Shown piece by piece: positions 7,796 through 63,258 of a stretch of DNA of 64,000 nucleotides. How positions within the stretch are numbered: the first letter of the stretch is position 1; each line of letters starts with the position of its first letter. Position numbers and translations under genes: made by a program. The notes beneath the pieces are model-generated. The model did not search any database and had not been told where the DNA came from. It was given only the letters and a program-made list of their open reading frames with translations. Source of the DNA: Chrysemys picta bellii (lineage: Eukaryota); contig NC_088794.1 in NCBI RefSeq assembly GCF_011386835.1, positions 22,568,001-22,632,000 of the forward strand, read 5' to 3'.

Positions 7796-8184
7796 CGCTT
7801 GGACAGGATGGGAGGAGGAGGAAGAGGATGGGCAGAAAAATAAAGAACTCCAAGAGTCTGTCCGTCCAAACTCCCAACTCCCCCAGGACAAACGCACATA
7901 CATGTAGCGATGCTGCAGAGATGGGGACAGGATGAGAAAGCTCTGCTCGGTTTTCCCCAGGCCCCCATGCCAGATAACCTTTGCTTGCTATGCCAGGCTT
8001 TGCCTGCCAGGCTAATGGAAAATGCTTCCAAGCAAAAGAAACCAAAGATGCAGCATTTGACAGTGCATTCGCCTAGCACACGAGTGGGACTTTCACTGGC
8101 GTATGTTAGCAGCCACAGCGTGTCTCGGGTGCAATCTATAGAGGGTGCAATGGGCTATATGAATTACTCACCCAGGTGATCCTG

Positions 8185-8190
8185 AATAAA
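8185..8190 (+). terminator. Poly(A) signal of A1
   Basis: AATAAA followed by a GT-rich tract; conserved at 29141 (A2) and 41242 (A3), and at the homologous position in B genes (18092, 51146). Confidence 0.65.
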
Positions 8191-18097: not shown

Positions 18098-18126
18098 AGG
18101 CATTGTTGGGTGTCAGATTGACAAGA

Positions 18127-26500: not shown

Positions 26501-28751
26501 ACAAATATTAAACTTTTCTTTGATCACTTGATAATTACCTGTTCTGTTCATTGCCTCTGGGGCACCTGGCATTGGCCACTGTCAGAAGACAGGACACTGG
26601 GCTAGATGGACCTTTAGTCTGATCCAGTATGTCCGCTCTTATGTTCGATACCCATTTTCATGCCTCTCCACCCTTCCTACTCTGAGCCAGTATAGGACAC
26701 AGAAATACAGGAAATAAATTGGGAGAAGCTATTCCTGTGGTCTTCGTGACTAGACTGAAAATGGAGCCTCACAAGGGATAGCCTGTCCCCGAGACAATTC
26801 CATCCCAATAACCCCGAAGAGGGTCAGATCATAAACTGAGCACTTGGATCCTTATCCAAGGGGACCTTTTCCCATATGTGGCTTATCGGTCCCTGCTCAC
26901 ACGTATTCTCCGGCAGTAGCCATGCTTTCCCTTTTATCTGTCATAGACCCCAGACCTACCAGGTCCATCTCACCGGAGACACTCAGCAATTGGCAAGGTT
27001 GGGTGCCTGGAAACCAATGGTTGTCTAGACTATCCCTCTGGCCATTGCAGGGTTGTTCCTTCTAGTAGATTTTCCAAGGCGTGTGCCATACTAGCTGTAA
27101 ATGTCTCCAGTGAAAAAGTGTAGCCCAATGCGTGGTGTGGGGACGTGGGAATCAGAAGATGTGAGTTCTAGTTCCATAGCTGCTACTCACTTTCTGGTGG
27201 TATCGACACTAAACTTTTTTTGCTCAGATACTACGGTGAGAGGCACCACATAACAACCTGGATAGAACGCACAGGACTTCCGTGAGGGATTATTGGACTA
27301 CACTCCAATAAGCCTCAGGGCTAGCACTCCTCTGGGCGGTAAAGAACTCCTGCATCACACCCTATTGTCACATTCTCACTGTTAACCAACAAGCGATCAC
27401 TCACGATTAGTACGAGAAGGCTCTAAAGCCTCGTCATAATTTCCCATCCCTTCCAGATGTCAAGCAGGCCAGGGCCATGCAGGGGAGGGTCACTCACTCT
27501 TGTGTTTATTTTCAGGAAAAAGTGTGTATTATGATACAGTTAATGAGACTACTTCGCCTCCCACTAACGAGGGGGAAACCGCCCACCCAACTGTGGCCAG
27601 CAACAAGGAGCAGAGGTATGAACATCAAACAAACAAAAGTCTTCAGGGCTGACTTTAGGGTCCCCCGAGGGGATTTTCTGGATCTGCTGCAGATTAAAAG
27701 GGTGGGGTTGTAAAAGACACACACACACCCCATCCTCCGAGTCTCTTACAGGGTTTGATGTAACCCCCTCAAGGCAGTGGAAAGACACAGACTGGCTGGA
27801 CTAGGAGCTGGAGCAGGCCCTTAGTGAGCTCTCTGTTCTTTCCACTCCATAGGAATGACAGATTTCAGAGTAGCAACTGTGTTAGTCTGTATCCGCAAAA
27901 AGAAGAACAGGAGTACTTGTGGCACCTTAGAGACTAACAAATGTATTAGAGCATAAGCTTTCGTGGAGTGGGCTGTAGTCCACGAAAGCTTATACTCTAA
28001 TACATTTGTTAGTCTCTAAGTTGCCACAAGTACTCCTGTTCTTCTTTTTCCATAGGAATGATTCGTTTCCATCAGCTGCCTTTGCCTTCAGATTAAAGCT
28101 CTTGTTTAGGACAACTGTCATCTTTGCAGCCTCCCATGAGTCCCAGCATGTGTGGGCAGGGAGAACGTTAGATAGAGACAGTGATTGTCTTTGTCTTTCT
28201 ATGTTACCAAAATACAAGATTCCAATTAAAAGGTGGAAAACTTCCTTTCCTAGTTAAAGCTAAACTGTTCTATGTGTGGTTTCCCATAACAGCCTTCCTG
28301 AGGCCCATTTCAGTGCACTCCTCTGCATCATTACGGTACTCCTGGTTGCTAAATTCCCGACAGCCGTACTGATCTTTACCATCGCCAGCCATCAGAGGAG
28401 CAGAGCCACGAGGGAGGGGAGCCAAAACCTGAACCAACACCAGCACCTCCCAATCACAGGTGATCTCATGAGCGTTCACATGACAGAATTAACCCCCACT
28501 GGGAGACACTCCACCGTGCTGGGCTACAGATCTAGGGAAACAAGAGGGAAAAGAGCCCTGGGGAACTAGAATAAGCTTCCAGGGCAAACTTTGCTGCTTC
28601 CTAAGGGAGAGGATAAAGGCTGAAGCTAAATGAACGTGTAATGAGCCTGCCATCCGTATGGGAGGTTGTCATCAACTGTCTCCATTTCTGATCTCTCACC
28701 CGCTTTCTAATCTGTGTTCCTCTTCCATTTCCAGTACAAGAGAACAGGTAA
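23550..28751 (+). CDS. Gene A2: two-IgV receptor, activating TM/tail, 5' half resembles gene I (probable chimera), 351 aa
   Basis: Exons: 23550-23592, 24271-24627, 25851-26171, 26947-26997, 27516-27615, 28293-28459 (TM ..VLLVAKFPTAV..), 28735-28751 (VQENR*). GT-AG introns, open frame, 1056 nt. Confidence 0.87.
26522..26646 (+). mobile_element. Short CR1 3' fragment (intron 3 of A2)
   Basis: ggcacctggcattggccactgtcagaagacagg..ctcttatgttc; shared with I, absent from A1 and A3. Confidence 0.7.
27859..28048. mobile_element. Penelope-like terminal-repeat fragment forming a long inverted repeat (intron 5 of A2 only)
   Basis: tttcagagtagc..gttagtctgtatccgcaaaaagaagaacaggagtacttgtggcaccttagagactaacaaatg.. 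followed by its reverse complement; flanked by a direct repeat tccataggaatga (27846-27858, 28049-28061). The family call is from recalled turtle repeats. Confidence 0.7.
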
Positions 28752-31700
28752 CGCTTGGACAGGATGGGAGGAGGAGGAAGAGGATGGACAGAAAAATAAA
28801 GAACTCCAAGAGTCTGTCCGTCCAAACTTCCAACTCCCCCAGGACAAACGCACATACATGTAGCGATGCTGCAGAGATGGGGACAGGATGAGAAAGCTCT
28901 GCTCGGTTTTCCCCAGGCCCCCATGCCGGATAACCTTTGCTTGCTATGCCAGGCTTTGCCTGCAAGGCTAATGGAAAATGCTTCCCTGCAAAAGAAACCA
29001 AAGATGCAGCATTTGGCAGTGCATTTGCCTAGCGCACGAGTGGGACTTTCACTGGCGTATGTTAGCAGCCACAGCGTGTCTCGGGTGCAATCTATAGAGG
29101 GTGCAATGGGCTATATGAATTACTCACCCAGGTGATGCTGAATAAAGGGCATTGTTGTGTCTCATGTGTCTTGTCTTGATTCACTGAAACTCAGTGTTGT
29201 CATGAAAAACTAGCAGTTTTACTAAATGTGTCCAGCCTGGCTGGATGTCTCCAGAAAACCAACTGAATGCTCCCCACGTGTCCAGGGAGATACCTTACCC
29301 AGAGGTGGACCACAATGGGGCAGTAGTGCACTGGATCAGGTAATCTTGGGCCATCTCACTCGAACACTCCCAGTACATAAAACAAGACCAGGAATCCATT
29401 GCAGGGCTGAGTTAGCATTTAACAACACAGAGTGGGAGCAGAGAGATGGGTTAAAACTGTGTTTTATCAGTTATATTCTGCAGCTAGTAACTTGTGACAG
29501 CCGAGGATACCTCTCTGTGTTTCCCCACAAAGCACAGAGATGGTCAGTGCCCTAAGATTCACACTGGGTCTGTAGGAACATAAAACAAATCCTGCTATCA
29601 GGTGTCAGTGGCCCCACCCTGAGAGTTAAAGGAGAATTTTCTCTCTCACCCTATGTATATGCTGCAATCGGATATGTGATTTGTAGTTTGTGCAAACATA
29701 CCCGTGGTCACTTTAATCTGGTTAACACACTAATAATAGCAGTAAACATGTGGCAACATGGATTACAGGGCAGGCTGAAGAAAACTGCCCAGGAATCCTG
29801 GGTATATATTTGCATTGTTAGCCTGCACCGAGGTCTATGCCACGGTGTCTTCACTGCTGTTTTAAGCCATGTTAGCTTGATTAAAGCTAATACATGTGTC
29901 TACCTAAGCTGCAATCACACCTACGATTGCAGTTTAGACACACCCGGAGATTGAGACCTTTCCCAGGGCGATAGAAAGCCTGGTGCTCTGCACCAGGCTC
30001 TGGTTGCCACCTGCTGCAAAGGCCCTCGCTGCTCTGCCATATCAGTGTGTGGCGTTATCCAAGATGGTTATCTGCACAGTCCCCTCCCCAGAGGGCCAGA
30101 GCTAAGAGCCACCAAACTCACATCACCTCAGAGAGCAGCGCACACACAGTGCCAAGGGACAGAAACAATGTTGTCTCTGTTCGGGGGGATTAAGGCCTGT
30201 CATAAGGATCCTCACAAACAATGTACCAGCGTGGGGCAACCCCCTTGGGGATAGTCCCTGTGTCAGAGGATTGGGGCCTATCTTAGAGAGCCTTCTTTCT
30301 ACCAGACCAGGCTTTCCTCTCACGGAATTAGCTCACTCCCTGAGGTAATTCTGTCTGAGCTCTCAAGGAATCCAGGGAAGCAATTTTCAGCAGTTTCATT
30401 TTAAGCCTTCTTAACAAAACAAAACAAAAAACCCTCATCAACTCTTCTCTTATAGTCTGTGCTGGCCAAGGAGTCCCTTCCCCAAGCCTGACCTTCACAC
30501 CAGTAACTCCAGTAACCAACATTTCCTGGCTCTTACCACCGAGTCTCAGCAATAAAGGGCTCCACGCAGTCTCTCTTCTGTCCGTTTGGTTTCTGGCGCA
30601 ATTCCTCTTGTACCATGCTCTGGATCCCACTAGCAGCTGGGATACTGGCTGTTTTGCCCGATGAGTCTGCAGGCATATGGAAGCTGTTACCTGTACTGCC
30701 TCTCACAAATAGGCTGTGAGCTGAGACCCACCAAACTCATGCCACCTCAGAGAGCAGTGCCCGCAGTGCCAGGAAAAAGAGACGGTGCTGTCTGTTTGTA
30801 GCCAATGAGACAAGGCAGGGGAGTGATACCACAATTTGATGCACACACAAAGCATCAAGTGAGCTGAAGACTCACTGTTTGCTGGTACCTGACACAATGT
30901 TTCCTGGTGGTGTCGCTAGGTTCGGACACAATGCGTGCACACCCCAGATAACCAGCTGCAGCCACGTCCTGTCCATTCGGGAGCCTTTGCAGTTTGTGTC
31001 CATGGGCCTCGGGTTTATACGGGAGCAGCACGCGCAGCAAGTGGCCGGCTCAGCCAGGAGACATCCACTTCCTACCCACTAGGTTATGAGACAGACATCT
31101 GCTCCAACACAGACCCAGGGTCTGAATCACTTGCCCCAAAGCTGCAAGTTTACCTGAAAACAGCTCACAGAAGTGTGCTTGTCTTTAGCACTCAGATGCC
31201 CAACTCCCAATGGGGTCTAAACCCAAATAAATCCGTTTTACCCTGCATAAAGCTTATGCAGGGCAAACTCATAAATTGTTCACCCTCTATAACACTGATA
31301 GAGAGATATGCACAGTTGTTTGCTCCCCCAGGTATTAATACATACTCTGAGTAAATTACTAAATAAAAAGTGATTTTATTAAATACAGAAAATAGGATTT
31401 AAGTGGTTCCAAGTAGTAACAGACAGAACAAAGTAAGTCACAAAGCAAAATAAAATAAAATGCGCAAATCGATGCCTAATCAAACTGAATACAGATAATC
31501 TCACCCTCAGAGATGCTTCAGTAAGTTTTTTCTCAGACTGGACATCTTCCAGGCCTGGGCACAATTCTTTCCCCTGGTACAGCTCTTGTTGCAGCTCAGG
31601 TGATAGCTAGGGGATTCTTCATGATTGCTCCTCTTTCCCTTTGTTCTCTTCCACCCCTTTATATATCTTTTGCATAAGGCGGGAACCCTTTGTCCCTCTG

Positions 31701-38000: not shown

Positions 38001-40852
38001 TTAATAACCCTGAAGAGGGTCAGATCATAAACTGAGCACTTGGATCCTTATCCAAGGGGACCTTTTCCCATATGTGGCTTATCGGTCCCTGCTCACACGT
38101 ATTCTCCGGCAGTAGCCATGCTTTCCCTTTTATCTGTCATAGACCCCAGACCTACCAGGTCCATCTCACCGGAGACACTCAGCAATTGGCAAGGTTGGGT
38201 GCCTGGAAACCAATGGTTGTCTAGACTATCCCTCTGGTCATTGCAGGGTTGTTCCTTCTAGTAGATTTTCCAAGGCATGCGCCATACTAGCTGTAAATGT
38301 CTCCAGTGAAAAAGTGTAGCCCAATGGATGGTGTGGGGGCCTGGGAATCAGAAGATGTGAGTTCTAGTTCCATAGCTGCTACTCACTTTCTGGTGGTATC
38401 GACACTAAACTTTTTTTGCTCAGATACTACGGTGAGAGGCACCACATAACAACCTGGATAGAATGCACAGGACTTCCGTGAGTGATTATTGGACTACACT
38501 CCAATAAGCCTCAGGGCTAGGACTCCTCTGGGCGGTAAAGAACTCCTGCATCACACCCTATTGTCACATTCTCACTGTTAACCAACAAGCGATCACTCAC
38601 AATTAGTACGAGAAGACTCTAAAGCCTCGTCATAATTTCCCATCACTTCCAGATGTCAAGCAGGCCAGGGCTATGCAGGGGAGGGTCACTCACTCTTGTG
38701 TTTATTTTCAGAAAAAAGTGTGTATTATGATACAGTTAATGAGGCTACTTCGCCTCCCACTAACGAGGGGGAAACCGCCCACCCAACTGTGGCCAGCAAC
38801 AAGGAGCAGAGGTATGAACATCAAACAAACAAAAGTCTTCAGGGCTGACTTTAGAGTCCCCAGTGGGGATTTTCTGGATCTGCGGCAGATTAAAAGGGTG
38901 GGGTTGTAAAAGACACACACACACCCCATCCTCCGAGTCTCTTACAGGGTTTGATCTAACCTAGGGTTACCATATTCAAACATTTAAAAAAGAGGACACT
39001 CCAGGGGGCCCCTCCCCCGCCCCAACTCCGCCCCTTCCCCGCCCCCGGCCCCGCCCCAACCCCACCCCTTCTCCGCCCCCATTCCAACCCTTTCCCCAAA
39101 GTCCCTGTCCCAACTCTGCCCCCTCCTCTGAGCACCCCGCATTCCCCGTCCCGCTCTGATCTTGGTTGGGGGTTGCTAAGTGCTTCCCTGCTCCCCACTT
39201 GCCCTGCAGCCTCTATGCCCTTGCCTGCCCTGCTCCTCCTCACCCTGCAGCCTCTGCACCCCTCCGCCCCCGCAGCCTCTGTGCCTCCTGCTCCCCACTC
39301 GCCCTGCAGTCTCTGCATTCCCCCCTGCAGCCTCTGTGCCTCCTGCTCCCCACTTGCCCTGCAGCCTCTGCGCCCCCTGCTCCCCACTCACACTGCAGCC
39401 TCTGCACCCCCCCCCACAGCCTCTGTGCCCCCTGCTCCCCACTCGCACTGCAGCCTCTGCACCCCCCCACAGCCTCTGTGCCCCCTGCTCCCCACTCGCA
39501 CTGCAGCCTCTGCACTCCCCCAGAGCCTCTGTGCCCCTTGCTCCCCACTTGCCCTGCAGCCTCTGCACCCCCCCCCCCGCAGCCTCTGTGCCTCCTGCTC
39601 CCCACTTGCCCTGCAGCCTCTGCACCCACCCGCCCCCGCAACCTCTGTGCCCCCTGCTCCCCCCTCGCCCTGCAGCCTCTGCACCCCCCCCCACAGCCTC
39701 TGTGTCCTCTGCTCTCTACTCGCCCTGCAGCCTCTGCACACCCCCCCCTGCAGCCTCTACACACACAAACACACACACACACCCCTCACCCGGCAGAGGG
39801 AGAGCTGCAGGCTCCACGTTGACTCAAACACTTCCTCGCTGCTCTGTGGGGGAGGAGGGAGCGGGGGAGGGACTTTGGCTGCTAGAAGCCCTAGTGGCTG
39901 CGAGCGGCTTTCAATCATGCCAGGCGTCCAATCAGCCACGCTGCACTCCGCAGGAGGGGAAATCCCGGACATTTCTACTTCATTAGAAATCCCCCCCGGA
40001 CGGCCATTTAAGGCTGAAAAAGCCGGACATGTCCGGGGAAACCCGGACGGATGGTAACCCTATCTAACCCCCTCAAGGCAGTGGAAAGACACCCACTGGC
40101 TGGACTAGGAGCTGGAGCAGGTCCTTAGTGAGCTGTCTGTTCTTTCCACTCCATAGGAATGATTCGTTTCCATCAGCTGCCCTTGCCTTCAGATTAAAGC
40201 TATTGTTTAAGACAACTGTCATCTTTGCAGCCTCCCATGAGTCCCAGCATGTGTGGGCAGGGAGAACGTTAGATAGAGACAGTGATTGTCTTTGGCTTTC
40301 TATGTTACCAAAATACAAGATTCCCATTAAAAGGTGGAAAACTTCCTTTCCCAGTTAAAGCTAAACTGTTCTATGTGTGGTTTCCCATAACAGCCTTCCT
40401 GAGGCCCATTTCAGTGCATTCCTCTCCATCATTATGGTACTCCTGGTTGCTAAATTCCCGACAGCCGTACTGATCTTTACCATCGCCAGCCGTCAGAGGA
40501 GCAGAGCCACGAGGGAGGGGAGCCAAAACCTGAACCAACACCAGCACCTCCCACTCACAGGTGATCTCATGAGCGTTCACATGACAGAATTAACCCCCAC
40601 TGGGAGACACTCCACCGTGCTGGGCTACAGATCTAGGGAAACAAGAGGGAAAAGAGCCCTGGGGAACTGGAATAAAGTTCCAGGGCAAACTTTGCTGCTT
40701 CCTAAGGGAGAGGATAAATGCTGAAGCTAAATGAACGTGTAATGAGCCTGCCATCCATATGGGAGGTTGTCAGCAACTGTCTCCATTTCTCATCTCTCAC
40801 CCGCTTTCTAATCTGTGTTCCTCTTCCATTTCCAGTACAAGAGAACAGGTAA
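35060..40852 (+). CDS. Gene A3: two-IgV receptor, activating type, paralog of A1, 351 aa
   Basis: Exons: 35060-35102, 35782-36138, 37352-37672, 38143-38193, 38712-38811, 40394-40560 (TM with Lys), 40836-40852. GT-AG introns, open frame. Confidence 0.88.
38962..40062. mobile_element. Non-autonomous hAT-like DNA transposon with minisatellite (intron 5 of A3)
   Basis: Same TIRs and TSD as 5963-7005; 58 bp longer, with the difference in the repeat region. Confidence 0.82.
39185..39760. repeat. Compound minisatellite, paralogous array with a different unit order
   Basis: Same subunits as 6185-6700, different number and order. Confidence 0.9.
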
Positions 40853-43800
40853 CGCTTGGACAGGATGGGAGGAGGAGGAAGAGGATGGGCAGAAAAATAA
40901 AGAACTCCAAGAGTCTGTCCGTCCAAACTCCCAACTCCCCCAGGACAAACGTACATACATGTAGCGATGCTGCAGAGATGGGGACAGGATGAGAAAGCTC
41001 TGCTCGGTTTTCCCCAGGCCCCCATGCCGGATAACCTTTGCTTGCTATGCCAGGCTTTGCCTGCCAGGCTAATGGAAAATGCTTCCAAGCAAAAGAAACC
41101 AAAGATGCAGCATTTGACAGTGCATTCGCCTAGCGCACGAGTGGGACTTTCACTGGCGTATGTTAGCAGCCACAGCGTGTCTCGGGTGCAATCTATAGAG
41201 GGTGCAATGGGCTATATGAATTACTCACCCAGGTGATGCTGAATAAAGGGCATTGTTGTGTCTCATGTGTCTTGTCTTGATTCACTGAAACTCAGTGTTG
41301 TCATGAAAAACTAGCAGTTTTACTAAATGTGTCCAGCCTGGCTGGATGTCTCCAGAAAATCAACTGAATGCTCCCCACGTGTCCAGGGAGATACCTTACC
41401 CAGAGGTGGACCAAAATGGGGCAGTAGTGCACTGGATCAGGTAATCTTCGGCCATCTCACTCGAACACTCCCAGTACATAAAACAAGACCAGAAATCCGT
41501 TGCAGGGCTGAGTTAGCATTTAACAACACAGAGTGGGAGCAGAGAGATGGGTTAAAACTGTGTTTTATCAGTTATATTCTGCAGCTAGTAACTTGTGACA
41601 GCCGAGGATACCTCTCTGTGTTTCCCCACAAAGCACAGAGGTGGTCAGTGCCCTAAGATTCACACTGGGTCTGTAGGAACATAAAACGAATCCTGCTACC
41701 AGGTGTCAGTGGCCCCACCCTAAGAGTTAAAGGAGAATTTTCTCTCTCACCCTATGTATATGCTGCAATCGGATATGTGATTTGTAGTTTGTGCAAACAT
41801 ACCCGTGGTCACTTTAATCTGGTTAACACACTAATAATAGCAGTCAACATGTGGCAACATGGGCTACAGGGCAGGCTGAAGAAAACTGCTCAGGGACCCT
41901 GGGTATATATTTGCATTGTTAGCCTGCACCGAGGTCTATACCACGGTGTCTTCACTGCTGTTTTTAGGCATGTTAGCTTGATTAAAGCTAATACATGTGT
42001 CTACCTAAGCTGCAATCACACCTACGATTGCAGCTTAGACATACCCAGAGATTGAGACCTTTCCCAGGGCGATAGAAAGCCTGGTGCTCTGGTTGCCACC
42101 TGCTGCAAAGGGGCTTGCTGCTCTGTCATATCAGTGTGCAGCGTTATCCAAGATGGTTATCTGCACAGTCCCCTCCCCAGAGGGCCAGAGCTAAGAGCCA
42201 CCAAACTCACATCACCTCAGAGAGCAGCGCACACACAGTGCCAAGGGACAGAAACAATGTTGTCTCTGTTCGGGGGGATTAAGGCCTGTCATAAGGATCC
42301 TCACAAACAATGTACCAGCGTGGGGCAACCCCCTTGGTGATAGTCCCTGTGTCAGAGGATTGGGGCCTATCTTAGAGCGCCTTCTTTCTACCAGACCAGG
42401 CTTTCCTCTCACGGAATTAGCTCACTCTCTGAGGTAATTCTGTCTGAGCTCTCAAGAAATCCAGGGAAGCAATTTTCAGCAATTTCATTTTAACCCTTCT
42501 TAACAAAACAAAACAAAAAACCCTCATCAACTCTTCTCTTATAGTCTGTGCTGGCCAAGGAGTCCCTTCCCCAAGCCTGACTCTCACGCCAGTAACTCCA
42601 GTAACCGACATTTCCTGGCTCTTACCACTGAGTCTCAGCAATAAAGGGCTCCACGCAGTCTCCCTTCTGTCCGTTTGGTTTCTGGCGCAATTCCTCTTCG
42701 CAGTAGCGCCAGCAGCAGTCCAACGGGTTCGCAGCCCCTGGCCCCTTAGCTTCCTGGGGGGTGTTGTAGTCGTCTCTGCCATTTCCTGCTGCCTTTTTTT
42801 TTCAATAAGGGTCAGCTAATTAAATTTCCAGCTCTCTCTCAGGTTCAGTGAGCAGGGCTAATCGGCCAGCCAGCCCCAGGCCTCTGACCCCAGAGGAATG
42901 GCATCCCTTACACCTTCACACCTTGCTTAATGCAAACACAAACAGAGGTTTGTTTGAAGATACAATTCACTGGGCTCCTTGCACATTGTTACTGACAGTC
43001 TCCCAGGTTCAGGTGCCAACCACGTTCTCCAGGGAGCTTCTGTCCCACACAGAGCCCTTGTGGGTCATTTTCCACATGCTCAGGTTCATACAGGAGCAGG
43101 ACACGCTGACTCTCACCTCTTTCCCACTGGGTGAAGATAAGAGGTGCAGCATAGGCTCTCTCAAAGGTGTGGTAGGCAACCATAGGCAGTGCAATCAGTA
43201 CAGGGGTCACAAGGAAGCCAACCAAACTATCCTCTATCAGCAGAGCTGTCTGGAAAACTTCTGTTTCATGAAACATTTTGAAGGGAGATCATGGCACTGC
43301 AAGAGGGTAGCGGGAAAGCCCTGGTCTCCCTACACGCCAGCTGTCCCAGGCTGATGGAGAAGTTCCTTCTTCACTGTGAAATTTAGAGCAGCCTCCAGAC
43401 CATTTGAAACACCTTGATGCCCCCCGACCCTGGCTAGTGGAGATGGGTGCAGGAGAGGATCTGGCCCACATTGTGTAATACAGAAACTAAGAGTTAACAA
43501 AATAACATACACTGATATTAAAAATGTTATTTGAAGCTATAATATGCACCATCCTCTTGCCCAGCTCCCTATGTTCAAGTTTCAATAGCTAAGTTGTTGT
43601 GCTTTTTTAAATGCGAAGCAGCTGGTAGTTCAAATACACAAAAACACAGGCACCCGCCCCAAAGACTAAATTGAGGGACGTTGCTCCAGTTAAAGAATTT
43701 TCCCAACAATTCCAAACCGACACTGTCACTCCAGAGCAACACGTGACAGACAGTGACAAAGGGAGTTCACTTCCTACCCGTGAGGGGAAATTCATCTTCA

Positions 43801-50738: not shown

Positions 50739-51768
50739 TAAGACAAGGATGTGATGGAAGGAGAAGTAGGCAAAGAAAAAGAATTCCAAGAGTCTTTCCA
50801 GCCAAGCTCCCAACTCCTCCAACACTTATACATATACACGCAGAGATGCTCACACAGATATTGACACCTGCAGAGAGAGACATGCTTCGGATGAGAAAGT
50901 TCTGCTCAGTTTTCCCAGTGCCTCCAGCCATGACAGATAAACCTTTGCTTGCTAACCCCTGTTTTACCTGCAAAGCTAATAGACGATGCCTAGGTGCAAA
51001 AGGAACTGAAGACACAGCATTTGGCAATGTGCACACCTAATTCCGGAGAGAGACTTGGAGTGTTGCACCTGAGCCATCTAGCCATCAGGACCAATCTCCA
51101 GGGGCCGCAATGGGGTATATGCATTACTCACACATAGGATGCTAAAATAAAAGGCATTGTTGGGTGTCAGATTGACAAGCGTATTGTCCTGATTCATCCG
51201 AACTCCGGGTGTGCCCACACTGCAATCAACAGTGTGACAGCAGGACACATAGGCATACCCAAGTTCGCGTTGATCTAGCTAGCGCCGGTAAGAACACCAG
51301 TGAACCTGCAGCAGCATGAGCTGTACAATCCCCCCAGGACTCTGGGTATGTTGAGCTGCTAGCCCAAGCTGCTGAGGATTCGCTGCTATCATGCACTGGG
51401 CTTGAGGGACATAGAGCTATTAAAGTCAGCAGATACCAGTGACAGAGTGCTACGGGCTACATTTCTCTCCCTGATTCAGCAAATTCCTTTCCCAGGAAAG
51501 GTGATAATTGTACCATGCTCTGGATCCCACTAGCAGCTGGGATACTGGCTGTTTTGCCCGATGAGTCTGCAGACATATGGAAGCTGTTACCTGTACTGCC
51601 TTTCGCAAATAGGCTGTGAGCTGAGACCCGCCAAACTCATGCCACCTCAGAGAGCAGTGCCCGCAGTGCCAGGAAAAAGAGACGGTGCTGTCTGTTTGTA
51701 GCCAATGAGACAAGGTAGGGGAGTGATACCACAATTTGATGCACACACAAAGCATCAAGTGAGCTGAA

Positions 51769-52054
51769 GGCTTGGTCTACACTCACCCCCCAAATCGAAC
51801 TAAGGTACGCAACTTCAGCTACGTGAATAATGTAGCTGAAGTTCGAAGTACCTTAGTTCGATCTTACCTCGGTCCACACGCGGCAGGCAGGCTCCCCCGT
51901 CGACTCCGCGGTACTCCTCTCGTCTAGCTGGAGTACCGCAGTCGACGGCGAGCACTTCCGGGTTCGACTTATCGCATCCAGACAAGACGCGATAAGTCGA
52001 ACCCAGAACTTCGATTGCCAGCCGCCGAACTAGCGGCTGGATGTAGACATACCC
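51769..52054. mobile_element. Young CpG-rich PIF/Harbinger-type MITE, 286 bp, unique to the B2-I spacer
   Basis: Ends ggcttggtctacac/tgtagacataccc, 3-bp TSD gaa. Empty sites (gctgaagactc) near 19795 and 30866. Confidence 0.82.
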
Positions 52055-52457
52055 GAAGACTCACTGTTTGCTGGGTACCTGACACAATGTTTCCTGGTGG
52101 TGTCGCTAGGTTCGGACACAATGCGTGCACATCCCAGATAACCAGCCACATCCTGTCCATTCGGGAGCCTTTGCAGTTTGTGTCCATGGGCCTCGGGTTT
52201 ATACGGAAGCAGCACGCGCAGCAAGTGGCCGGCTCAGCCAGGAGACATCCACTTCCTACCCACTAGGTGATGAGACAGGAACAGCAAGGGCTCCCTTTTA
52301 AAGGGGCAGGACGTAAGCCAAACCTGCAGGGCTCATTTCACAGCACTGGAAGGGAGACCCCCCACTGCAGCCCCTGTAGGCTGGGAAGAACTGATAGAGA
52401 CTTGGGGTGGGGAGGAAGATCTGAGGACAGCAGAGGCCAAAGTTACCTTATTCCATA

Positions 52458-53637
52458 TGTGACGGGTTGGATCACAGAAACCCCCTTGGGAGCTGCCACC
52501 TAATGTACCAAGACTACTTCTATTCCTGTTTTCCCTGCCAGCTCAGGACTCCAGCACCCTGTCTTGCTGAGCCAGACACTCCCGTCTGCTCCAACACAGA
52601 CCCAGGGTCTGAATCACTTGCCCCAAAGCTGCAAGTTTACCTGAAAACAGCTCACAGAAGTGTGCTTGTCTTTAGCACTCAGATGCCCAACTCCCAATGG
52701 GGTCTAAACCCAAATAAATCCATTTTACCCTGCATAAAGCTTATGCAGGGCAAACTCATAAACTGTTCGCCCTCTATAACACTGATAAAGAGATGTGCAC
52801 AGTTCTTTGCTCCCCCAGGTATTAATACATACTCTGAGTAAATTACTAAATAAAAAGTGATTTTATTAAATACAGAAAAAAGGATTTAAGTGGTTCCAAG
52901 TAGTAACAGACAGAACAAAGTAAGTCACAAAGCAAAATAAAATAAAATGCGCAAATCGATGCCTAATCAAACTGAATACAGATAATCTCACCCTCAGAGA
53001 TGCTTCAGTAAGTTTTTTCTCAGACTGGACATCTTCCAGGCCTGGGCACAATTCTTTCCCCTGGTACAGCTCTTGTTGCAGCTCAGGTGATAGCTAGGGG
53101 ATTCTTCATGATTGCTCCTCTCTCCCTTTTCTCTCTTCCACCCCTTTATATATCTTTTGCATAAGGTGGGAACCCTTTGTCCCTCTGGGTTTCCACCCCC
53201 CCTCACTGGAAAAGCACCAGGTTAAAGATGACGTATGAAACAGGTTTAAGATGGATTCCAGTTCAGGTGACATGATCACATGTCACTGCAAGACTTCATT
53301 GCTCACTTGCCAGCACACACATATACAGGAAGACTAACAGGTAAACACAGCCATCTGCAGACAATCGTCCTTGTTAATGGGAGTCATCAAGATTCCAAAC
53401 CATCATTAATGGCCCACACTTTACATAATTATAATAGGCCCTCAGGGTTATGTTTTATATTTCTAGTTTTAGATACAAGAATGGTACCTTTCTACAAATA
53501 GGATGCTCACACTCAGTAGATTATGAGCTTTGTAATGATACCTTACAAGAGACCTTTTGCACGAAGCATATCCCAGTTGCATTATATTCACTTATTATCA
53601 TGTTTTTATAAAACCATATAGACTGCACAATGTCACA
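52458..53637. mobile_element. Copy of the ccata solo LTR, 1180 bp
   Basis: ccata|TGTGAC...GTCACA|ccata, the same insertion site as 20203. Confidence 0.88.
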
Positions 53638-54420
53638 CCATACATTTGGGAACGTTGGCAACTCTGTCTCACACACACATTGGGGGTGGGCAGAGGAAGG
53701 ACAGACCCCAAAAACCATATAATCTTTCTATGTAAAATTCATGATTTGGGGACAAATCATGATTTTGTGGGGGCTAACTCATGATTTTTTAGCCTGGCAG
53801 TAATGCACACAAAAGCTAGGTACTGTTTTTATTCTCAAAACCACAGCTCATTTCACCTGGGTTTGAGGTTCTCTGCCTTGCAATCATGGAAGAGGAATCC
53901 AGGGCCAGGCTGGGGGCGGTAAGGAGAGAGCGGGGCTCTTTGCTCACAGTCTTCAGACTCAGGGAGGATGAATCCTGTAGGTTTCCTACCCGCAGCAGCT
54001 TGGATCTTTGAGGACCAGAGTTTCAGCACTATTAGCTGACAATAGCACAAGAACCAGCTGCACAAGACAGAACAATGGGCTCGGAGCCTGGTCACTGCTC
54101 AGTGTTAAAAGATCTGTTGTTTCCTGATTTCACAAGAAACCAGGCTGCAAAAATAGGGTAACCCAGCTGTGGGTTTTTTTCCATTCTCTTATTGCGGTGT
54201 CATCCGCATGCCAGTTTGACTCATCACCGGCCCCAAAGCAAAGCTGAATCTGGCCATCCTGGGAGAGGATCTCGTTACACAATGCAAAACACTGACACCA
54301 GCAAGAACTCACCCCCAGAATGCTGCACCCGAACGGCCAAACCCAGTACCAGCAGCAATGCTCTCCTTTTCCCCGCACTGGTTGTAAACCCAAGGCAGAG
54401 CCAAACAAAACTGACTTATA

Positions 54421-54694
54421 GGGCTTGTCTACACACACAATTGGTTTGTGGAAAGTTGAGGTGTGAGCGTACGCTGTACTAGCCTGCCGCGGACTAACTG
54501 CCCACGTGACCCTGCTGACGCTGACTAACAGTTCGTCAATCCACTGTGATCTACTCCTCTTTGAAACAGGATTAGATCAAAACACACCAACGAACCATTA
54601 ATGCGCATCGGTGGGTGCACAGGCACTAACCATGCGGGCTAGTGTGGGTCTCACACCAGCTTGCTGCCAACTAAATATTTGTGTAGACAAGCCC
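54421..54694. mobile_element. PIF/Harbinger-type MITE upstream of I
   Basis: Paralogous copy of 716-989. Confidence 0.78.
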
Positions 54695-55763
54695 ATACTC
54701 CCACCCCGCACACACACACACACACACACACACACCATGAAGACTATAGCTGGTTTTCCCATCCCGTGAAAAATGTCAAGATTTCAAAATGTTTCCCCTA
54801 CCACACTGGGATGAAACCGAGCCCTTTTGAAGTTTTTTTGTGAAACACCCAATAGGAAGAAGATCAGAATAACCAATAGCCCAGGAGTTATGGCAGTCAC
54901 CTCAGTTCTGAGTGCCCAGTGCGCTGTTCCAATGAACAGGTCATTATTTATACAAAGTTGGAACAGCTTCAACAGGAGAGATTGAGAGAGACGCATCCCA
55001 GAACAGCCAATAGGACTGGATGGATCAGCTGAGCCAAGCCATGCATTCCAATCTCCCACATGGAGGCGAACCAACATGATCCCGCTTCCCTTTCCTCAGC
55101 ACTGTAATCCTCCTCCTTTTTGTATGGCTTTAACAAAAATATCCTCTCCGGGTCAACATCCCAAACACAGAGCTAGAGGATGACACAAGGGACCCTGATG
55201 GGAAGCATTTGGGGGGTGCTCTACTAAGGAGATGGCATGGCCTAATGGATTGGGCACTAGCCTCAGACTCAGGAGACCCGTGTTCTGCTCCTATCTCTGA
55301 CGAGCTGTGTAACACCAGGCAAAGGAATTGCCCATCTCTGTTTTCCTAGCAGTACAATGTAGCTATGGCTAAGTCCCCCCTTTATAAAGTGCTTTGAGAT
55401 CTAGGGGTACAAAACTAAAAGCTGTTCATGTACTATACACCAATGCTTCAAATGTCATTAAAAATAGAACATCTGCTAATCTCTCTTTTTTCCCCTCACT
55501 CCCCATTTCCGAAAGCAGATATCTAAACATGTGCTAAAACGAGAAGCAGCTGATAGCCAAAATGCAGGCTTCCTGTGTGAAGGCTCAGATTAGGACTGTG
55601 GTAGAAACATCTTTCCAACAATTGCAAACGATACTGTCACTCTGGAGCATGACGACACAAACAGTGACAAAGGGAGTTCACTGCCGACCCATCTTGACAG
55701 CAACAAAGAAGCCTCAATGCTGCATTCCACCTCTCCAAGATCTAAACCACTTCCCATTACAGG

Positions 55764-58700
55764 ATGGGTCGCTTCTCAGCCCGGCTGCTATTGCTGGCAC
55801 TAACAGGTAAGGAACCGAGAGATCGGCCCTCCCCTCCCGTAGACACAGAACATTCCGTTTGCTCTTGCACTCGTAGCACACTGCGCTTGTTTGCTTTTGC
55901 ACTTATCATTTTGGCAGGCTGCGAGCAGGCACGGAAATTGGGCACCCAGCTATTTGCAATGACGAGAAATGCTTGGCTTGCTGGGGCTCCATATTTTCCC
56001 CCAGTCATTGCATATGTTATAGTGGAATGAAAAGCCATAGAGTGGATGTCAGAGAGGGTTTAACCAACCCCAATTTTTAGAAACAGACTTTTCTCATGCT
56101 AGAAGGGATTCCTGTCTCCAAACCAACCTAGGAACTGGGTGCCATGAGTCTGGAGAAAGTAACAGAGAATGTTCTGTAGGGAACAACCCTGCAAGATGAC
56201 TCAAGGATTAGATGATCAGACCAGTGCCAGTTTACCAGACAGAGCCAGCCTAGCTCCTGATCAGTTGTTCACATGCTAACCTGCAATGAAGATCGGGGGA
56301 CATAAGCTTCACAGTGGGGAAGAACATGGGAAGTTGAATAGGACGGAGGCAGTGGCAATGGATCGAGTCTCACCGCAGAAGCTCCTTTACACAGAGATGG
56401 GAGCTTGGAAAACCAGTCACAGCAGCCTGAAGTTGCAGCATTGATGGGCAGGTCATTCTCACCAATGTTTTCTTTCCTTGGCAGGGCCGTGCCTGGCAAG
56501 AGAGGAGCTGGAATTGGTGACAGCTGTACAGGGAAGCTCTTTCAGTACAATGTGTTACTACGATAATGACAAGTATTCACTAGAGAAATTCTGGTGCAAG
56601 ATGCTGTCAGACCAGGAATGCAACAGCAGACTCTTCTTGAGCATCCGAGCAAAGGGAGAGAAATACCTAAATATTGCACCAAAGAGAAGGGTCGATCTAA
56701 CAAACTTGGGAACAGGCTGGATTTCTGTGTCCATGACGGAGCTCCGGATAGAGGATTCAGGAACATACTTCTGTGGGGTTTACGATCATCAGACAATTAT
56801 CCCATTGAAAAAGATTCAATTGACTGTTTCTTATGACGGTGAGCTAAAGACCAGTCATGACCTAGTTGGGACACAAATCAGCTCAAACCAGGATATTCCA
56901 AATTAGACTAATGCTCCATTCCTATCCCAAAGAAAACACAGGGTCTATAGATGTCAACTCCCCAGTATATAATATAGAGAGAGATGGTTAAAATAATAAC
57001 CTTCAATTACATATCTAGACATAGAAACACCATGTGAATCATACACATATATGTATGTATTTAGATGTACACTTATCACATATATATGTAAAAAGAAGAA
57101 CTGGTTAGGAACGTATTTCTCCCCCTCCCACTCCAGCCCACCTCACCCCCATCCCCAAAGAATTTTAACCAAAAAACCCCAAACAAACATTTTTAGTCTT
57201 TTTGTCAAAACAATGAAAACCAAAAGGTCTGGGTTGAAAACTCAAAAAAATTCAGTTTTCGATTGTTCAATTAAAACTCTTTTTTTTTAAATGAAAATTA
57301 ACATTTCCCCCAAATGCCCTATTTAATCAAAAAGCCATTTTGCATCAAAAATTGAACCTTTTAGACAGAAAATCTTTGACCAGCTGGGATAGAAACCCCA
57401 TGGGATGGAGAAACCCCGCTCCCAATTTGAAGTCCTGATTACCAGTTGGGATGAACAATAACAAGACTGGGCTTCTTCATTCACACCCTCCCTGTCCTGG
57501 TTGAGTGTTGTTTGTTGTCACTACTGGTAAAGGTGCTGCAATGACACCTCTGGACCCTTATCCTTACACACAGGGGAGGCCCAGCGTGGCCAGTTGCAGG
57601 GCAAGTTTCCCCGTGCTACCCCAGCCAAACTACCTCAGCCCTGTCCTGGGTGGTCCCCCATTCTAGGGAGGAGAGAGGAATCCCCACTTCAGGTCTCACT
57701 CAGTCCTTAGCTCCTCAGATGCTAAGACTGCCAGGAGCAGAGGGGCCAGTGGTGAAGGTGCATTTTCAGAGTGGTGGCAGCATTAGCAGATGCTCAGGCT
57801 GGTTCAGGACTGCCCCTGTAGTGATTGATATGCAGTTTTCCAGTGGTAATTATGCACAGCCAATCCTAGGAAATATTTTCCTTGGGCTGGAAGAGATTAT
57901 TTCCATTTCTTTTGCAAGCTCCTTTTGGGATGGGGTTTGGTCTGATCCTTTGTCTTCCCATTTAGCTGCAGGGGGGCATTTATACACCCGCGGGACTTTT
58001 ATACACCTCTCTTTCCTTCCCTTTCTCACAATAACCAGTCACCGGTCTCTCTCTCCAGCTCCCATGACGCTATCTGCCAAAAAAGGAGACTCCATCTCGC
58101 TAAATTGTTCCTATTTTTTGATGGACGACAGCAGGATACCTAATAATTTTACCTGGTGCAAAATGCTAACCGCAACTAGATGTCAACCTGTCGTCAGCGT
58201 CAAGATTGATCAGATTCTTAATATGCAAAAAAGGACCAGGATAAAGCTTGACCGGTGGAACAGAGTGATTATAGTGACGCTGGAGGCGCTCCAGTTACGT
58301 GACTCCGGGGAGTATCATTGTGAGACCCATTTCCAGGGAAGTACCATGCTACTGAAGAGGATCTCACTGAATGTTTTGGGTGAGTTACTCAAAGAAAAGT
58401 GGCCTTCCCTTAAAAGTCAGCAAATTCTCATCCCCTGGTGGATGTGATAGCAGGGCAGAGCTCAGATGGGCTCCTCAGAGCAGGGAAATTGCAGGAGACC
58501 CAGAGACAACTTCTGAATTTACCTTTTGAGACCTTTGATATTTACTAGTCTTATAAACAAACTCGGCCAGATCCTCTGCCCACGTAAATCAGAGGGGAAT
58601 CATTAGTTGTTATGGACCTACACCAATTTACACCATCAAAAGAAATGGCCCCAGAACGTTGCCCAAATCTCTGACTGAACTCATCCCTTTGTTATAGTTC

Positions 58701-61700
58701 ACAAATATTAAACTTTTCTTTGATCACTTGATAATTACCTGTTCTGTTCATTGCCTCTGGGGCACCTGGCATTGGCCACTGTCAGAAGACAGGATACTGG
58801 GCTAGATGGACCTTTGGTCTGATCCAGTATTTCCGCTCTTATGTTTGATACCCATTTTCATGCCTCTCCACCCTTCCTACTCTGAGCCATTATAGGACAC
58901 AGAAATACAGGAAATAAATTGGGAGAAGCTATTCCTGTGGTCTTCCTGACTAGACTGAAAATGGAGCCTCACAAGGGATAGCCTGTCCCCAAGACAATTC
59001 ATCCCAATAACCCCGAAGAGGGTCAGATCATAAACTGAGCACTTGGATCCTTATCCAAGGGGACCTTTTCCCATATGTGGCTTATCGGTCCCTGCTCACA
59101 TGTATTCTCCGGCAGTAGCCATGCTTTCCCTTTTATCTGTCATAGACCCCAGACCTATCAGGTCCATCTCACCGGAGACAATCAGCAATTGGCAAGGTTG
59201 GGTGCCTGGAAACCCAATGGTTGTCTAGACTATCCCTCTGGCCATTGCAGGGTTGTTCCTTCTAGTAGATTTTCCAAGGCGTGCGCCATACTAGCTGTAA
59301 ATGTCTCCAGTGAAAAAATGTAGCCCAATGGATGATGTGGGGGCCTGGGAATCAGAAGATGTGAGTTCTAGTTCCATAGCTGCTACTCACTTTCTGGTGG
59401 TATCGACACTAAACTTTTTTTGCTCAGATACTACGGTGAGAGGCACCACATAACAACCTGGATAGAACGCACAGGACTTCCGTGAGGGATTATTGGACTA
59501 CACTCCAATAAGCCTCAGGGCTAGGACTCCTCTGGGTGGTAAAGGGCTCCTGCATCACACCCTATTGTCACATTCTCACTGTTAACCAACAAGCGATCAC
59601 TCACGATTAGTACGAGAAGGCTCTAATGCCTCGTCATAATTTCCCATCACTTCCAGAATGTCAAGCAGGCCAGGGCCATGCAGGGGATGGTCACTCACTC
59701 TTGTGTTTATTTTCAGGAAAAAGTGTGTATTATGATACAATTAATGAGGCTACTTCGCCTCCCACTAACGAGGGGGAAACCGCCCACCCAACTGTGGCCA
59801 GCAACAAGGAGCAGAGGTATGAACATCAAACAAACAAAAGTCTTCAGGGCTGACTTTAGGGTCCCCCGAGGGGATTTTCTGGCTCTGCTGCAGATTAAAA
59901 GGGTGGGGTTGTAAAAGACACACACACACCCCATCCTCCGAGTCTCTTACAGGGTTGATCTAACCCCCTCAAGGCAGTGGAAAGACACCCACTGGCTGGA
60001 CTAGGAGCTGGAGCAGGCCCTTAGTGATCTGTCTGTTCTTTCCACTCCATAGGAATACTTAGGGGATGAGCCCAGAGCCCAGCTGTGCTGTGCCGTCTCT
60101 GTCTCTTGCATTAAGAACACAGCCTAAGACCAAACAATATCACATGTCAAATGAGAGCCATTACCAGGCCTGATCAAAGAAGACCCTGATAATTACCCTG
60201 ATGAAAGACAGCCCGTGGAGGGGGTACAGCATCCTAATGAGGGGGTACAGCATCCTTTGAATTCTAGTAGCACTGCCAGCAAGTGCTAGAAAATAATTTA
60301 AGTTCCTGAGTTTATCCCTTGCATGAAGCAACCCTGGGAAAATACAGCAGGGCCAGAACCCCCAGAGGCATCAATCAGCATAGCCCCATTGACGTCAGTG
60401 GAATTGCATCAAGGTACAAGCAGCCAGTGTGATTTTTGAATGCTGAATTTAGATCTTGGAGCCTTAATCCAGTTTCCAACACACAGAGTCCCCTCCCAAA
60501 TTAACCAGGTCACCTTTGATGCCAAGAATATTAATGGAGATATTGTGCATTTCCTTGCAGAATTCTTTATGTTGTCCTGGCACTGGGCTCCTTCCTGGCT
60601 GGCAGTGTACTGATTGCTATCATGGCTACTATTTTCACCAAAGGGAGAAAAAGAGGTACATCTCTATCACTTGTCCAGTTTTCATGCAGTTTGGGTTTGT
60701 TCCCACTGGCCTGGATCAACAGTGTTGAGGGTCATGCTGAATGGAAATGGGTGCCGGGGGGGGGGAGGAGAGAGAGAGAGTTGCTAGATCTTTCACCCCA
60801 TTACCCACTTTTAGTTGTATGTAAAAATACAAAGGGTTAGTTACAGTTTTTACATTAAATTGAGATTCTGTCTTTCACAGTAGGGAACGGGCTGAATTTT
60901 GGTGAACACCCTAACTGCAGACTAGCAGCAGAGCAGGTAGGTTGAAGGTCTGGTATTTCTAGCACTTTGTTCCATCTCCTCCATATAGCTATTTGAAGCA
61001 GATGGAAGCAGGATTGTCTAGTGTTTAGAGCAGGAGGATGGGAATCAGGATTCTTGTATTTCTGTTTGTCTGCCTGTAATACAAATATTACCATGACCAC
61101 AAGCTGCATGAAGTTTAATGTCCCTGAATCTGCAATCTGATCAGCATGGGCTCAAAGGTCTAAACTCAGAGATCCTTGAATGCTAGATGATTGCAAAGCA
61201 TTCATATTACTGAGCAAGCCAATATGGGAAGTGCCTCAGTCCAATTCCTCAGTCCTTACAGTAGGGTTCATATAGGGGGGTGTTCTCTGAGCACCCCAGA
61301 GAAATGTATTTCTTTTCCCATGTCCCCCCCCCCCCCATTCCCCCTGCAGTTTCACCCTCTAGAGAGGAGATTTTTAGCAGTGGTAAAGTGAGACTTAATA
61401 TTCAGAAAATGGAAATGTTTAAAAGGATGATATTCGATTTATTCTCCTATTATTTGTGGCTTTCCAGAAGGATGAAGGACACCCCAGAGATGCCACCCCA
61501 GATGGGGAGTTGAAGAACGGTATAATATATGCCATGCTAAGGCTCCAACCCAAGCCAAAGCCAGACGATGTCACGTATGCCAACGTGGAGCCTCCACCAA
61601 AACCAAAAGGTGCCAAACGTTCTGCTGAGCCCTCAGCTGTCCTGTTCTCCTCAGGCACCGTGGAGTATGCAACCATCATCTTTGGAGACTCACCTCCACG

Positions 61701-61737
61701 GTCTGGGACTAAAGAGAAACAAACCAGCCCTAACTGA
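55764..61737 (+). CDS. Gene I: two-IgV TREM/CD300-like inhibitory receptor (uncharged TM, three ITIM-like motifs), 429 aa
   Basis: Exons: 55764-55806, 56485-56838, 58059-58379, 59146-59196, 59717-59816, 60561-60655 (TM), 60881-60936, 61468-61737. Phases 1,1,1,1,2,1,0 chain without a break to give 1290 nt ending in TGA at 61735-61737. Confidence 0.87.
58721..58845 (+). mobile_element. Short CR1 3' fragment (intron 3 of I)
   Basis: Paralogous to 26522-26646. Confidence 0.7.
60561..60655 (+). CDS. Uncharged transmembrane exon of gene I
   Basis: Acceptor ttccttgcag, phase 2: RILYVVLALGSFLAGSVLIAIMATIFTKGRKRG, donor gtacat. Hydrophobic core with no charged residue, followed by a basic stop-transfer segment. 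Confidence 0.85.
60881..60936 (+). CDS. First cytoplasmic exon of gene I
   Basis: tctttcacag|..56 nt..|gtaggt; phase 1 in, phase 0 out, VGNGLNFGEHPNCRLAAEQ. It bridges the TM exon and the terminal exon in frame. Confidence 0.75.
61468..61737 (+). CDS. Terminal cytoplasmic exon of gene I with ITIM/ITSM-like motifs
   Basis: Acceptor gctttccag. Encodes IIYAML (61522-61539), VTYANV (61570-61587) and VEYATI (61660-61677). Confidence 0.88.
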   Translation, partial: KDEGHPRDATPDGELKNGIIYAMLRLQPKPKPDDVTYANVEPPPKPKGAKRSAEPSAVLFSSGTVEYATIIFGDSPPRSGTKEKQTSPN

Positions 61738-62320: not shown

Positions 62321-62326
62321 AATAAA
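62321..62326 (+). terminator. Candidate poly(A) signal of gene I
   Basis: First AATAAA I found downstream of the stop at 61737. Confidence 0.35.
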
Positions 62327-63083: not shown

Positions 63084-63258
63084 GGGTATGTCTACACTAC
63101 AGTGAAACACCTGCAGCTGGTTCTGAGACCCCTCAGAGCCCGGGCTCTAGCCCGAATAGCCGCATTGCAATTTGATAGCCTCGCAGCCAGAGCCCTGCAA
63201 GCCTGAGTCAGTTAACATGAGCCAGTCCCGGCTGTTTGACTGCAGTGTCATCAGACCC
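63084..63258. mobile_element. Degenerate Harbinger-type MITE
   Basis: Starts gggtatgtctacactac; decayed right end gcagtgtcatcagaccc. Confidence 0.5.

Follow-up and report, generated by a model that had tools for sequence, protein, structure and literature searches.

The 64,000-bp stretch of Chrysemys picta bellii DNA studied here (contig NC_088794.1, positions 22,568,001–22,632,000; referred to as the window) originates from the TREM cluster of this turtle. The genes are labelled as follows: I, the inhibitory gene; A1, A2 and A3, chimeras that carry the ectodomain of I on a different membrane anchor; B and B', activating genes with two immunoglobulin (Ig) domains; T, a TREM2-like gene with one Ig domain, located 4.7 kb upstream of the window. 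The gene order in Chrysemys is T-A1-B-A2-A3-B'-I. The sequence common to I and the A genes ends abruptly at position 60056. This switch point is very probably the junction of a chimeric gene, in which the 5' part of I was joined to the 3' part of T by a single fusion in the deirochelyine stem. The junction, both parental genes, the ancestral gene order, the occurrence of the same junction in two genera, and the spliced transcripts were observed directly.

Loci and sequencing data

Locus L002 of Chrysemys, retrieved via protein P0003, was 100% identical to window positions 1–17795 (L002 7938–25732) and added 7.9 kb 5' of the window, where the 3' part of gene T is situated. The other loci were from Mauremys mutica (L001), Emys orbicularis (L003 and L005), Malaclemys terrapin (L004 and L006) and Trachemys scripta (L007). 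The sequencing evidence consisted of contigs from three public runs of three studies, which were taken for RNA from their records, the GT..AG joints arguing for RNA, and of one further public run of DNA. The parts of I and of the A genes described below are on the + strand. A literature search on turtle TREM found nothing specific. The analysis gives a first map of the turtle TREM cluster. The genes were initially named CD300; this name was replaced by TREM after comparisons with PDB structures and with the chicken genes.

The junction at position 60056

In a six-way alignment of I, A and T sequences, the last 10 bases common to I and A were CCATAGGAAT (60047..60056). The 21-mer TTCTTTCCACTCCATAGGAAT that ends here was present in exactly four copies in the window, ending at 7103, 27856, 40160 and 60056, with a chance expectation of 0. 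In the self-BLAST, I 52055–60056 was 96.4% identical to A2 19794–27856 over 8,075 bp, and the alignment stopped exactly at 60056/27856. The identity between I and the three A genes was 96–98% over about 8 kb. A1 and A3 aligned to I across this shared 5' part, the cassette, with their own 1,042-bp insertion as the sole interruption, and the final 99 bp of the I cassette were 98% identical to A1/A3. According to the self-BLAST (96–98%) and the sliding identity, the upstream region and 5' cassette common to I and all three A genes occupy 51508..60056 of I. The I/A homology begins about 3.7 kb 5' of the ATG at 55764, in agreement with the more than 1.5 kb of upstream similarity that had been claimed before.

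The similarity did not fade towards the break. The identity in 300-bp sliding windows was 95–99% up to the break and about 50% after it, as in a forced alignment; no gradual decay was detected in these windows. The comparison of 60057–64000 with the rest of the window by blastn (word 7, E ≤ 1) and tblastx gave nothing meaningful, and the transmembrane (TM) exon of I scored at the chance level (z 0.4–0.6 against peptide shuffles) with the TM exons of A/T and B. The observation behind the original prediction, an abrupt end of I/A similarity after CCATAGGAAT at 60056 and at 7103, 27856 and 40160, with no detectable homology of the following I sequence to the A-type TM and tail region, was thus confirmed, while its interpretation was supported in part. 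Its location of the break in the intron that follows the stalk was correct, but there is a single stalk exon, and the intron, counted by coding exons, separates coding exon 4 (stalk, 59717–59816) from coding exon 5 (TM, 60561–60655).

At the junction, the six-way alignment reads ..ATAGGAAT|ACTT in I, ..GGAGGAATTT|GATTCG in T and ..ATAGGAAT|GATTCG in A, placing the parental break site of I between 60056 and 60057. Emys T and Mauremys I matched their Chrysemys counterparts at the junction in the same alignment. Both parental breaks are preceded by AGGAAT, with an overlap or microhomology of at most 1–6 bp. Since the I and T sequences differ around the joint apart from this overlap, the joint is non-homologous.

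Gene T as the donor of the 3' part

The A genes encode products of 334–365 amino acids (P0003, P0043/P0004, P0046), in which the I-like ectodomain and stalk are followed by a TM segment in which a Lys lies mid-membrane (..LLVAKFPTAV..), and then by a short tail. In A1 the T-derived module spans 7104..9641 (junction 7103/7104) and comprises 233 bp of T intron, the exons and the 3' flank; the Lys-TM exon (..LLVAKFPTAVLIF..) is at 7337–7503, its start being given by RNA contigs that join the stalk exon to 7337, and the last coding exon was placed at 7779–7795 by exon-end analysis. The A2 module spans 28060..30609 with the TM exon from 28293, and the A3 module 40161..42698 with the TM exon from 40394 (junction 40160/40161).

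From the junction base on, the A1 module was 96–97.8% identical to Chrysemys T (L002 2798–5221), and it likewise matched Emys T and the B gene downstream of it (L003 18293–24108) from that base; the right side of A coincided with T from the same base in Trachemys as well. The T/A identity of 96–98% extends over about 2.5 kb, from the last ~230 bp of the stalk-TM intron through the Lys-TM exon and the last exon into the 3' flank. To the left of the break T has its own unrelated intron, with its stalk mini-exon about 1.2–1.4 kb upstream. The break in T is within its stalk-TM intron, 228–233 bp 5' of the TM exon. All A genes share the motif KFP, where T has KFL. A B-like gene was also considered as the donor of the module, as A 7254–7574 is 73% like B 15197–15521; this candidate was dropped because T matches at 96–98% from the junction on. 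A weak resemblance of A 7104–7253 to the B stalk exon was noticed, for which homology is not claimed.

The product of T (P0061, 293 amino acids, one Ig domain) bears the NCBI name TREM2-like; P0039 and P0053 are further T proteins. In the PDB search, the Ig domain of T matched human TREM2 structures with E=1.6e-29. As in the TREM2 lineage, T has one V-set domain, the closest match of which is TREM2, a TM segment containing a Lys, and a short tail. It is a conserved TREM2-like gene, with orthologues annotated in Emys, Malaclemys, Trachemys, Platysternon, Dermochelys, Chelydra and Gopherus. In a survey of turtle proteins, the combination of an I-type stalk with a T-type TM segment was not found outside Chrysemys and Malaclemys.

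Gene I as the unrearranged parent

Gene I encodes a product of 412 amino acids (P0041) consisting of a signal peptide, two V-set Ig domains, a stalk, an uncharged TM segment and a tail with three tyrosine motifs. By translation and tblastn, the signal exon was placed at 55764–55806, the Ig1 exon at about 56485–56838 and the Ig2 exon at about 58058–58380. The stalk exon (..SVYYDTINEATSPP..ASNKEQ) at 59717..59816 ends in phase 2, as determined from the GT..AG joint 59816>60561, motif positions and tblastn; identical stalk exons are present in A1 (about 5713–5812), A2 (about 27515–27614) and A3 (about 38712–38811). The first 240 bp of the stalk-TM intron belong to the cassette, and the remainder, 60057..60560, is found in I only. 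The uncharged TM exon (R-ILYVVLALGSFLAGSVLIAIMATIFTKGRKR) at 60561..60655 was defined by the joints 59816>60561 and 60655>60881 and by a 100% tblastn match, and the small cytoplasmic exon (VGNGLNFGEHPNCRLAAEQ) at 60881..60936 by tblastn and splice joints. The last coding exon, 61468..61737, contains IIYAML, VTYANV and VEYATI and the stop codon at 61735–61737; its start is given by the splice joints.

The nearest solved relatives in the PDB search with I were pIgR (3e-21) and TLT-1 (2.7e-9, on Ig2), and Pfam V-set is recorded on the homologues of I. The tail aligned with a bird TREM-B1-like protein (P0037) and is conserved in Pelodiscus too. Chicken TREM-B1, an inhibitory receptor, combines two V-set domains and an uncharged TM segment with one immunoreceptor tyrosine-based switch motif (ITSM) and two immunoreceptor tyrosine-based inhibitory motifs (ITIMs) including VEYATL, and phosphatase recruitment has been demonstrated for it (PMC4788293). 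The V-set domains of I belong to the TREM/pIgR type, its TM segment is uncharged, and the ITSM and ITIMs of its long tail follow the TREM-B1 order; I is a homologue of chicken TREM-B1/TLT-1 and, by these motifs, of the inhibitory type.

The I gene of Mauremys aligned with window positions 57180–63992 in a single 6.9-kb high-scoring segment pair with 90.4% identity. It crosses the site uninterrupted, CCATAGAAAT being followed directly by ACTTAGGGG, and the Mauremys identity around 60057..60560 was 86–90%. I was also continuous across the site in Emys (L005, 96.3%), Malaclemys (L006, 97.1%) and Trachemys (L007, 96.9%); the segment 60057..60560 is ancestral and not an insertion. In the protein survey, the I-type stalk was paired with the I-type TM/ITIM tail in seven families of turtles, and also in Pelodiscus and the bird TREM-B1-like protein. 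As I and its orthologues in four other turtles are collinear across 60056, the rearrangement is carried by the A genes and not by I. The earlier wording, that I diverges from A, has to be reversed: I is the unrearranged parent. The A genes continue past the break with the Lys-TM exon, and I with unrelated neutral TM and ITIM exons, as had been described; the view of one ectodomain cassette on two unrelated signalling modules was upheld, and both modules are indeed old, the I tail occurring in Pelodiscus and a bird and the Lys-TM module occurring in T across turtle families.

Transcript and assembly support

The contigs of the three runs presumed to be RNA contained the I joints 59816>60561, 60655>60881 and 60936>61468, all of them GT..AG. 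In other contigs of the same runs the stalk exon continued into CCTTCCTGAGGCCC.., the start of the A1/A3 TM exon (7337, 40394). The spliced contigs of both forms indicate that I and the chimera are both transcribed and spliced as predicted. In the DNA run, a 4.3-kb contig spanned 59977–61800 in the I form, and the match of a second contig stopped at 60056 and was followed by GATTCGTTTCC, corresponding to the A form.

Probable origin and age of the fusion

The gene order in Emys, determined from two retrieved loci that overlap on one contig, was T-B-I with no A gene: the T 3' module leads straight into B, and B leads straight into the I upstream region. In Malaclemys the order was A-B-I; the A junction was identical to that of Chrysemys and was free of the A2 hairpin and the A1/A3 insertion described below. 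Of the related turtles, Malaclemys keeps the same boundary in its A gene; Emys has no A gene, and in the I genes of four turtles the sequence runs across the site without a boundary.

The I-A identity of the cassette was 97.1–97.2% (divergence ~2.8%) and the T-A identity of the module 97.0–97.8% (divergence 2.2–3.0%). These equal values indicate that the two sides of the joint are of the same age. In trees rooted with Mauremys, Emys I was placed outside all deirochelyine A/I cassettes in both halves of the cassette, with a support of 100/98–99. Both modules are ancient; their joining is young.

The arrangement has the features of a chimeric gene birth: the 5' part comes from the downstream parent and the 3' part from the upstream parent, both parents are kept, and the outgroup order is unduplicated. 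Starting from an ancestral T-B-I locus, as still found in Emys, breaks would have occurred in the deirochelyine stem in the stalk-TM intron of I, 240 bp from its start, and in T, 228–233 bp upstream of its TM exon, and the broken ends would have been joined once and non-homologously. The novel joint of a tandem duplication, deduced from the gene order, would have placed the 5' part of I before the 3' part of T. Such a joint explains why B follows the A module as it follows T in Emys; the flank 3' of A is the flank 3' of T, leading into B. Because both introns are in phase 2, the fusion keeps the reading frame. The product would combine the promoter, signal peptide, two V-set domains and stalk of I with the Lys-TM segment and short tail of T, and could act as a DAP12-coupled activating twin of I, A and I presumably signalling in opposite directions on a shared ligand. 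Thereafter A would have been amplified to A1, A2 and A3 in Chrysemys, partly via a duplication of about 33 kb (238–18125 versus 33240–51179, 98.3% in the self-BLAST), and would have recombined back with I in Trachemys. The edge is sharp because the right-hand DNA comes from two different genes, and later conversion or crossover cannot blur it.

A second novel joint, at which the T module abuts the I-type upstream region, was detected at 30608/30609 of the window (A2-A3) and at L002 5220–5221 (T-A1); in Emys, the end of the T module and the start of the I upstream region are about 9.9 kb apart, with B in between. Because of this second joint, the path must have involved more than one step. Several duplication paths from T-B-I to T-A1-B-A2-A3-B'-I fit the data and none is unique, so the first step alone is claimed.

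The following points weigh against a single fusion in the deirochelyine stem. The A gene could predate the Emys split, its absence from Emys being a loss through recombination between repeats; the T/A module tree is without an outgroup, and the T/A split cannot be placed before or after the Emys split from it. The change from T-B-I to the deduced T-A-B-I order needs the second novel joint or the deletion of a B copy, therefore a single simple tandem duplication is insufficient. The cassette is a mosaic (24 sites grouping by species, A2 basal in the 3' half; see below), which makes the dating by divergence rough. The DAP12 pairing, surface expression and ligand sharing are predictions.

Alternative explanations of the sharp edge

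The same chimera might have been formed via a mobile-element nuclease, if an endonuclease of a foldback family nicked I and T after AGGAAT and later nicked A2 again at this site, which would account for the position of the hairpin there. In A2, the junction is followed by a 193-bp foldback (hairpin) repeat at 27857–28049, after which the target duplication of 10 bp (CCATAGGAAT) recurs at 28050–28059, so that 27857..28059 is inserted exactly at the junction. One edge of the duplication coincides with the junction to the base, for which a chance of roughly 1e-4 to 1e-3 was estimated by us; both parental breaks follow AGGAAT, and the family was active in the lineage, as a second copy with an 11-bp duplication is specific to Malaclemys (L004 24066–24251) and the Chrysemys site (about 16428–16439) is empty. 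However, the target of this only other copy is unrelated (ATTCTCAGACT), and no target preference or logo can be derived from two copies in the ~230 kb searched. A1, A3 and Malaclemys A lack the hairpin, no repeat trace being present at their junctions, and it is a later insertion confined to A2. Its arms are 91.5% alike in spite of the perfect target duplication, which indicates the insertion of an already formed hairpin. A microhomology joint of 1 bp or 6 bp requires no nuclease. The involvement of the nuclease in the fusion is improbable on these grounds. The position of the hairpin on the junction is unlikely to be a chance coincidence.

According to another explanation, favoured by the original prediction, A and I are two old genes with native signalling modules, the 5' halves of which were kept alike by conversion that always ended at one point of the intron. 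Such homogenization of the ligand-binding part is documented in other paired receptors (PMC3210942, PMC5701461), and exchange was also detected here. In the quartet of Chrysemys I, Malaclemys I, Chrysemys A3 and Malaclemys A, 24 sites grouped by species against 6 in the third pattern; the by-species sites were clustered at 54284–56617, i.e. in the upstream region and Ig1, and the tree of the 5' half of the cassette was an unresolved star. In Trachemys (L007 5362–18198), T is followed directly by an I gene, which has an A-type cassette up to 58427 and is I-type from 59318 according to polarised diagnostic sites; it is the product of an A × I crossover that deleted the A tail and B.

The sites grouping by gene type (41) nevertheless exceeded those grouping by species, and in the tree of the 3' half the I genes of Chrysemys and Malaclemys clustered by type (100/99); A2 was basal among the deirochelyine copies in this half and kept ancestral states in the Ig2 region. 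The Ig exons, instead of being held identical, were the most diverged part of the cassette (91–94% in windows over Ig2). With the cassette at 97.2% DNA identity, the protein identity of the I and A ectodomains was about 91%, i.e. about 9% of the residues differ. The dN/dS (ratio of non-synonymous to synonymous rates) of I versus A was 0.5–0.9, and 27 non-synonymous and 4 synonymous changes were counted between A1 and Malaclemys A. Moreover, the Lys-TM module is native to T, which A matches at 97–98% from the junction base; Emys has T-B-I without A; and the I-type stalk with a T-type TM segment was restricted to Chrysemys and Malaclemys in the protein survey. Exchange between A and I is thus real and occurred in both directions, but homogenization appears to play a minor part and is not the cause of the sharp edge. 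The T right side of A, the Emys order, the equal divergences and the rooted trees contradict two ancient genes kept alike, and this explanation is very improbable.

An assembly mis-join, or a transposon or foreign segment with the TM and ITIM exons inserted into I at 60056, could account for the abruptness of the break and for a repeat element at the same base in A2, but its probability is negligible: it is refuted by the continuity of I through the site in four independent turtle assemblies, and the 4.3-kb contig of the DNA run, the RNA contigs joining the stalk exon to the I TM exon, the conservation of the I tail in Pelodiscus and a bird, and the lack of a second CCATAGGAAT and of any return of A-type sequence downstream of the site in I all disagree with it.

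Comparison with known receptor systems

A and I are neighbouring genes in one 64-kb window, with the identities of 97.2% (cassette DNA) and about 91% (ectodomain protein) given above. The uncharged TM segment of I is combined with the three motifs of the last exon, read from the sequence, and the A genes have the mid-membrane Lys in a module from a TREM2-like gene, for which DAP12 pairing is predicted. A and I would accordingly form a pair of activating and inhibitory immune receptors with opposite roles.

In the Siglec-11/Siglec-16 and Siglec-5/Siglec-14 pairs, the upstream and ectodomain exons are near-identical, the TM/tail exons are unrelated, and the neighbours exchange sequence (PMC5701461). 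An inhibitory receptor there has a DAP12-type activating twin, as is predicted for I and A, and a switch to an unrelated TM/tail is found in both systems. In the Siglecs, however, the similarity is ascribed to repeated gene conversion between established genes, whereas that of the turtle A/I pair results mainly from recent descent from one fusion, with both donors identified and the joint determined to the base. Merohomogenization, in which exchange is limited to the ligand-binding part and the signalling parts remain separate, has been described for KLRC, KLRA, KLRB and PIR (Fossum et al. 2011, PMC3210942). The exchange in the 5' half and the Trachemys hybrid are similar to it, but the turtle exchange is secondary and the Ig exons are diverging fast. 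In comparison with the chicken TREM cluster (TREM-A1, TREM-B1, TREM-B2), I has the TREM-B1 layout, and T the TREM-A1/TREM2 layout with one V-set domain, a charged TM segment and a short tail (Viertlboeck and colleagues; PMC4788293). In contrast, no two-Ig receptor on a charged TM segment is described in that paper, and turtles have an old (B) and a young (A) one.

The birth of chimeric genes at the joints of tandem duplications is a general mechanism. The A genes agree with it in the order of a downstream 5' part and an upstream 3' part, in the intact parents, the introns of equal phase and the microhomology, the duplication itself being deduced from the gene order. The fusion is thus a well-known kind of event, here resolved to a single base, and not a new kind of system. 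The origin of an activating twin is usually inferred long afterwards, at a stage where the joints have been wiped out by conversion. In the turtle locus the record is complete: the parents beside the product, a sister genus with the pre-fusion order, two genera with the joint, and a third genus in which the product was recombined back onto the inhibitory tail. It is a dated case from nature in which an ectodomain was moved from an ITIM tail to an anchor of the TREM2/DAP12 type, the same design idea as in engineered chimeric receptors.

B genes

The stalk exon of B is at 15068–15163 and its TM exon at about 15271–15400; those of B' are at 48125–48217 and about 48331–48460, respectively, with an intron of ~107 bp. 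The stalk exon was related to that of I (z 5.0) and the Lys-TM exon to that of T (z 17). B was found in all hard-shelled turtle families sampled, and its DNA identity to the A/T module was 73%. B has the same composite layout as A and is much older; it may go back to a similar graft at an earlier time.

It is conceivable, though doubtful, that the stalk-TM intron is a reusable grafting point, at which a two-Ig TLT-1-like ectodomain was put on a TREM2-type anchor at least twice independently, the younger joint being on a nick-prone AGGAAT site that was later hit to the base by a foldback retroelement. If this is true, activating partners are made recurrently by site-biased exon shuffling and not by point mutation or conversion.

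The Ig2 region of B was more similar to A/I than the rest of the gene: 13109–13966 and 46170–47027 were 89–90% like 57710–58561, compared with about 73% elsewhere in B, suggesting that B and the A/I cassette once exchanged domain 2.

Other repeats and insertions

In the 5' region of Malaclemys A, about 6.8 kb (L004 2768–9547) has no counterpart in the Chrysemys A genes and is probably a large insertion. An open reading frame in the T intron region (L002 225–563) resembled, by eye, the C-terminal end of the reverse transcriptase of a CR1-type long interspersed element. The 1,042-bp insertion is present in A1 (5963–7004) and A3 (38962–40061), 92–99 bp to the left of the junction; A2, I and Malaclemys A lack it. 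With terminal inverted repeats of 12 bp (TAGGGTTACCAT), a target duplication of 7–8 bp (TCTAACC) and an internal 53-bp tandem array (6362–6685), it looks like a non-autonomous hAT-type element.

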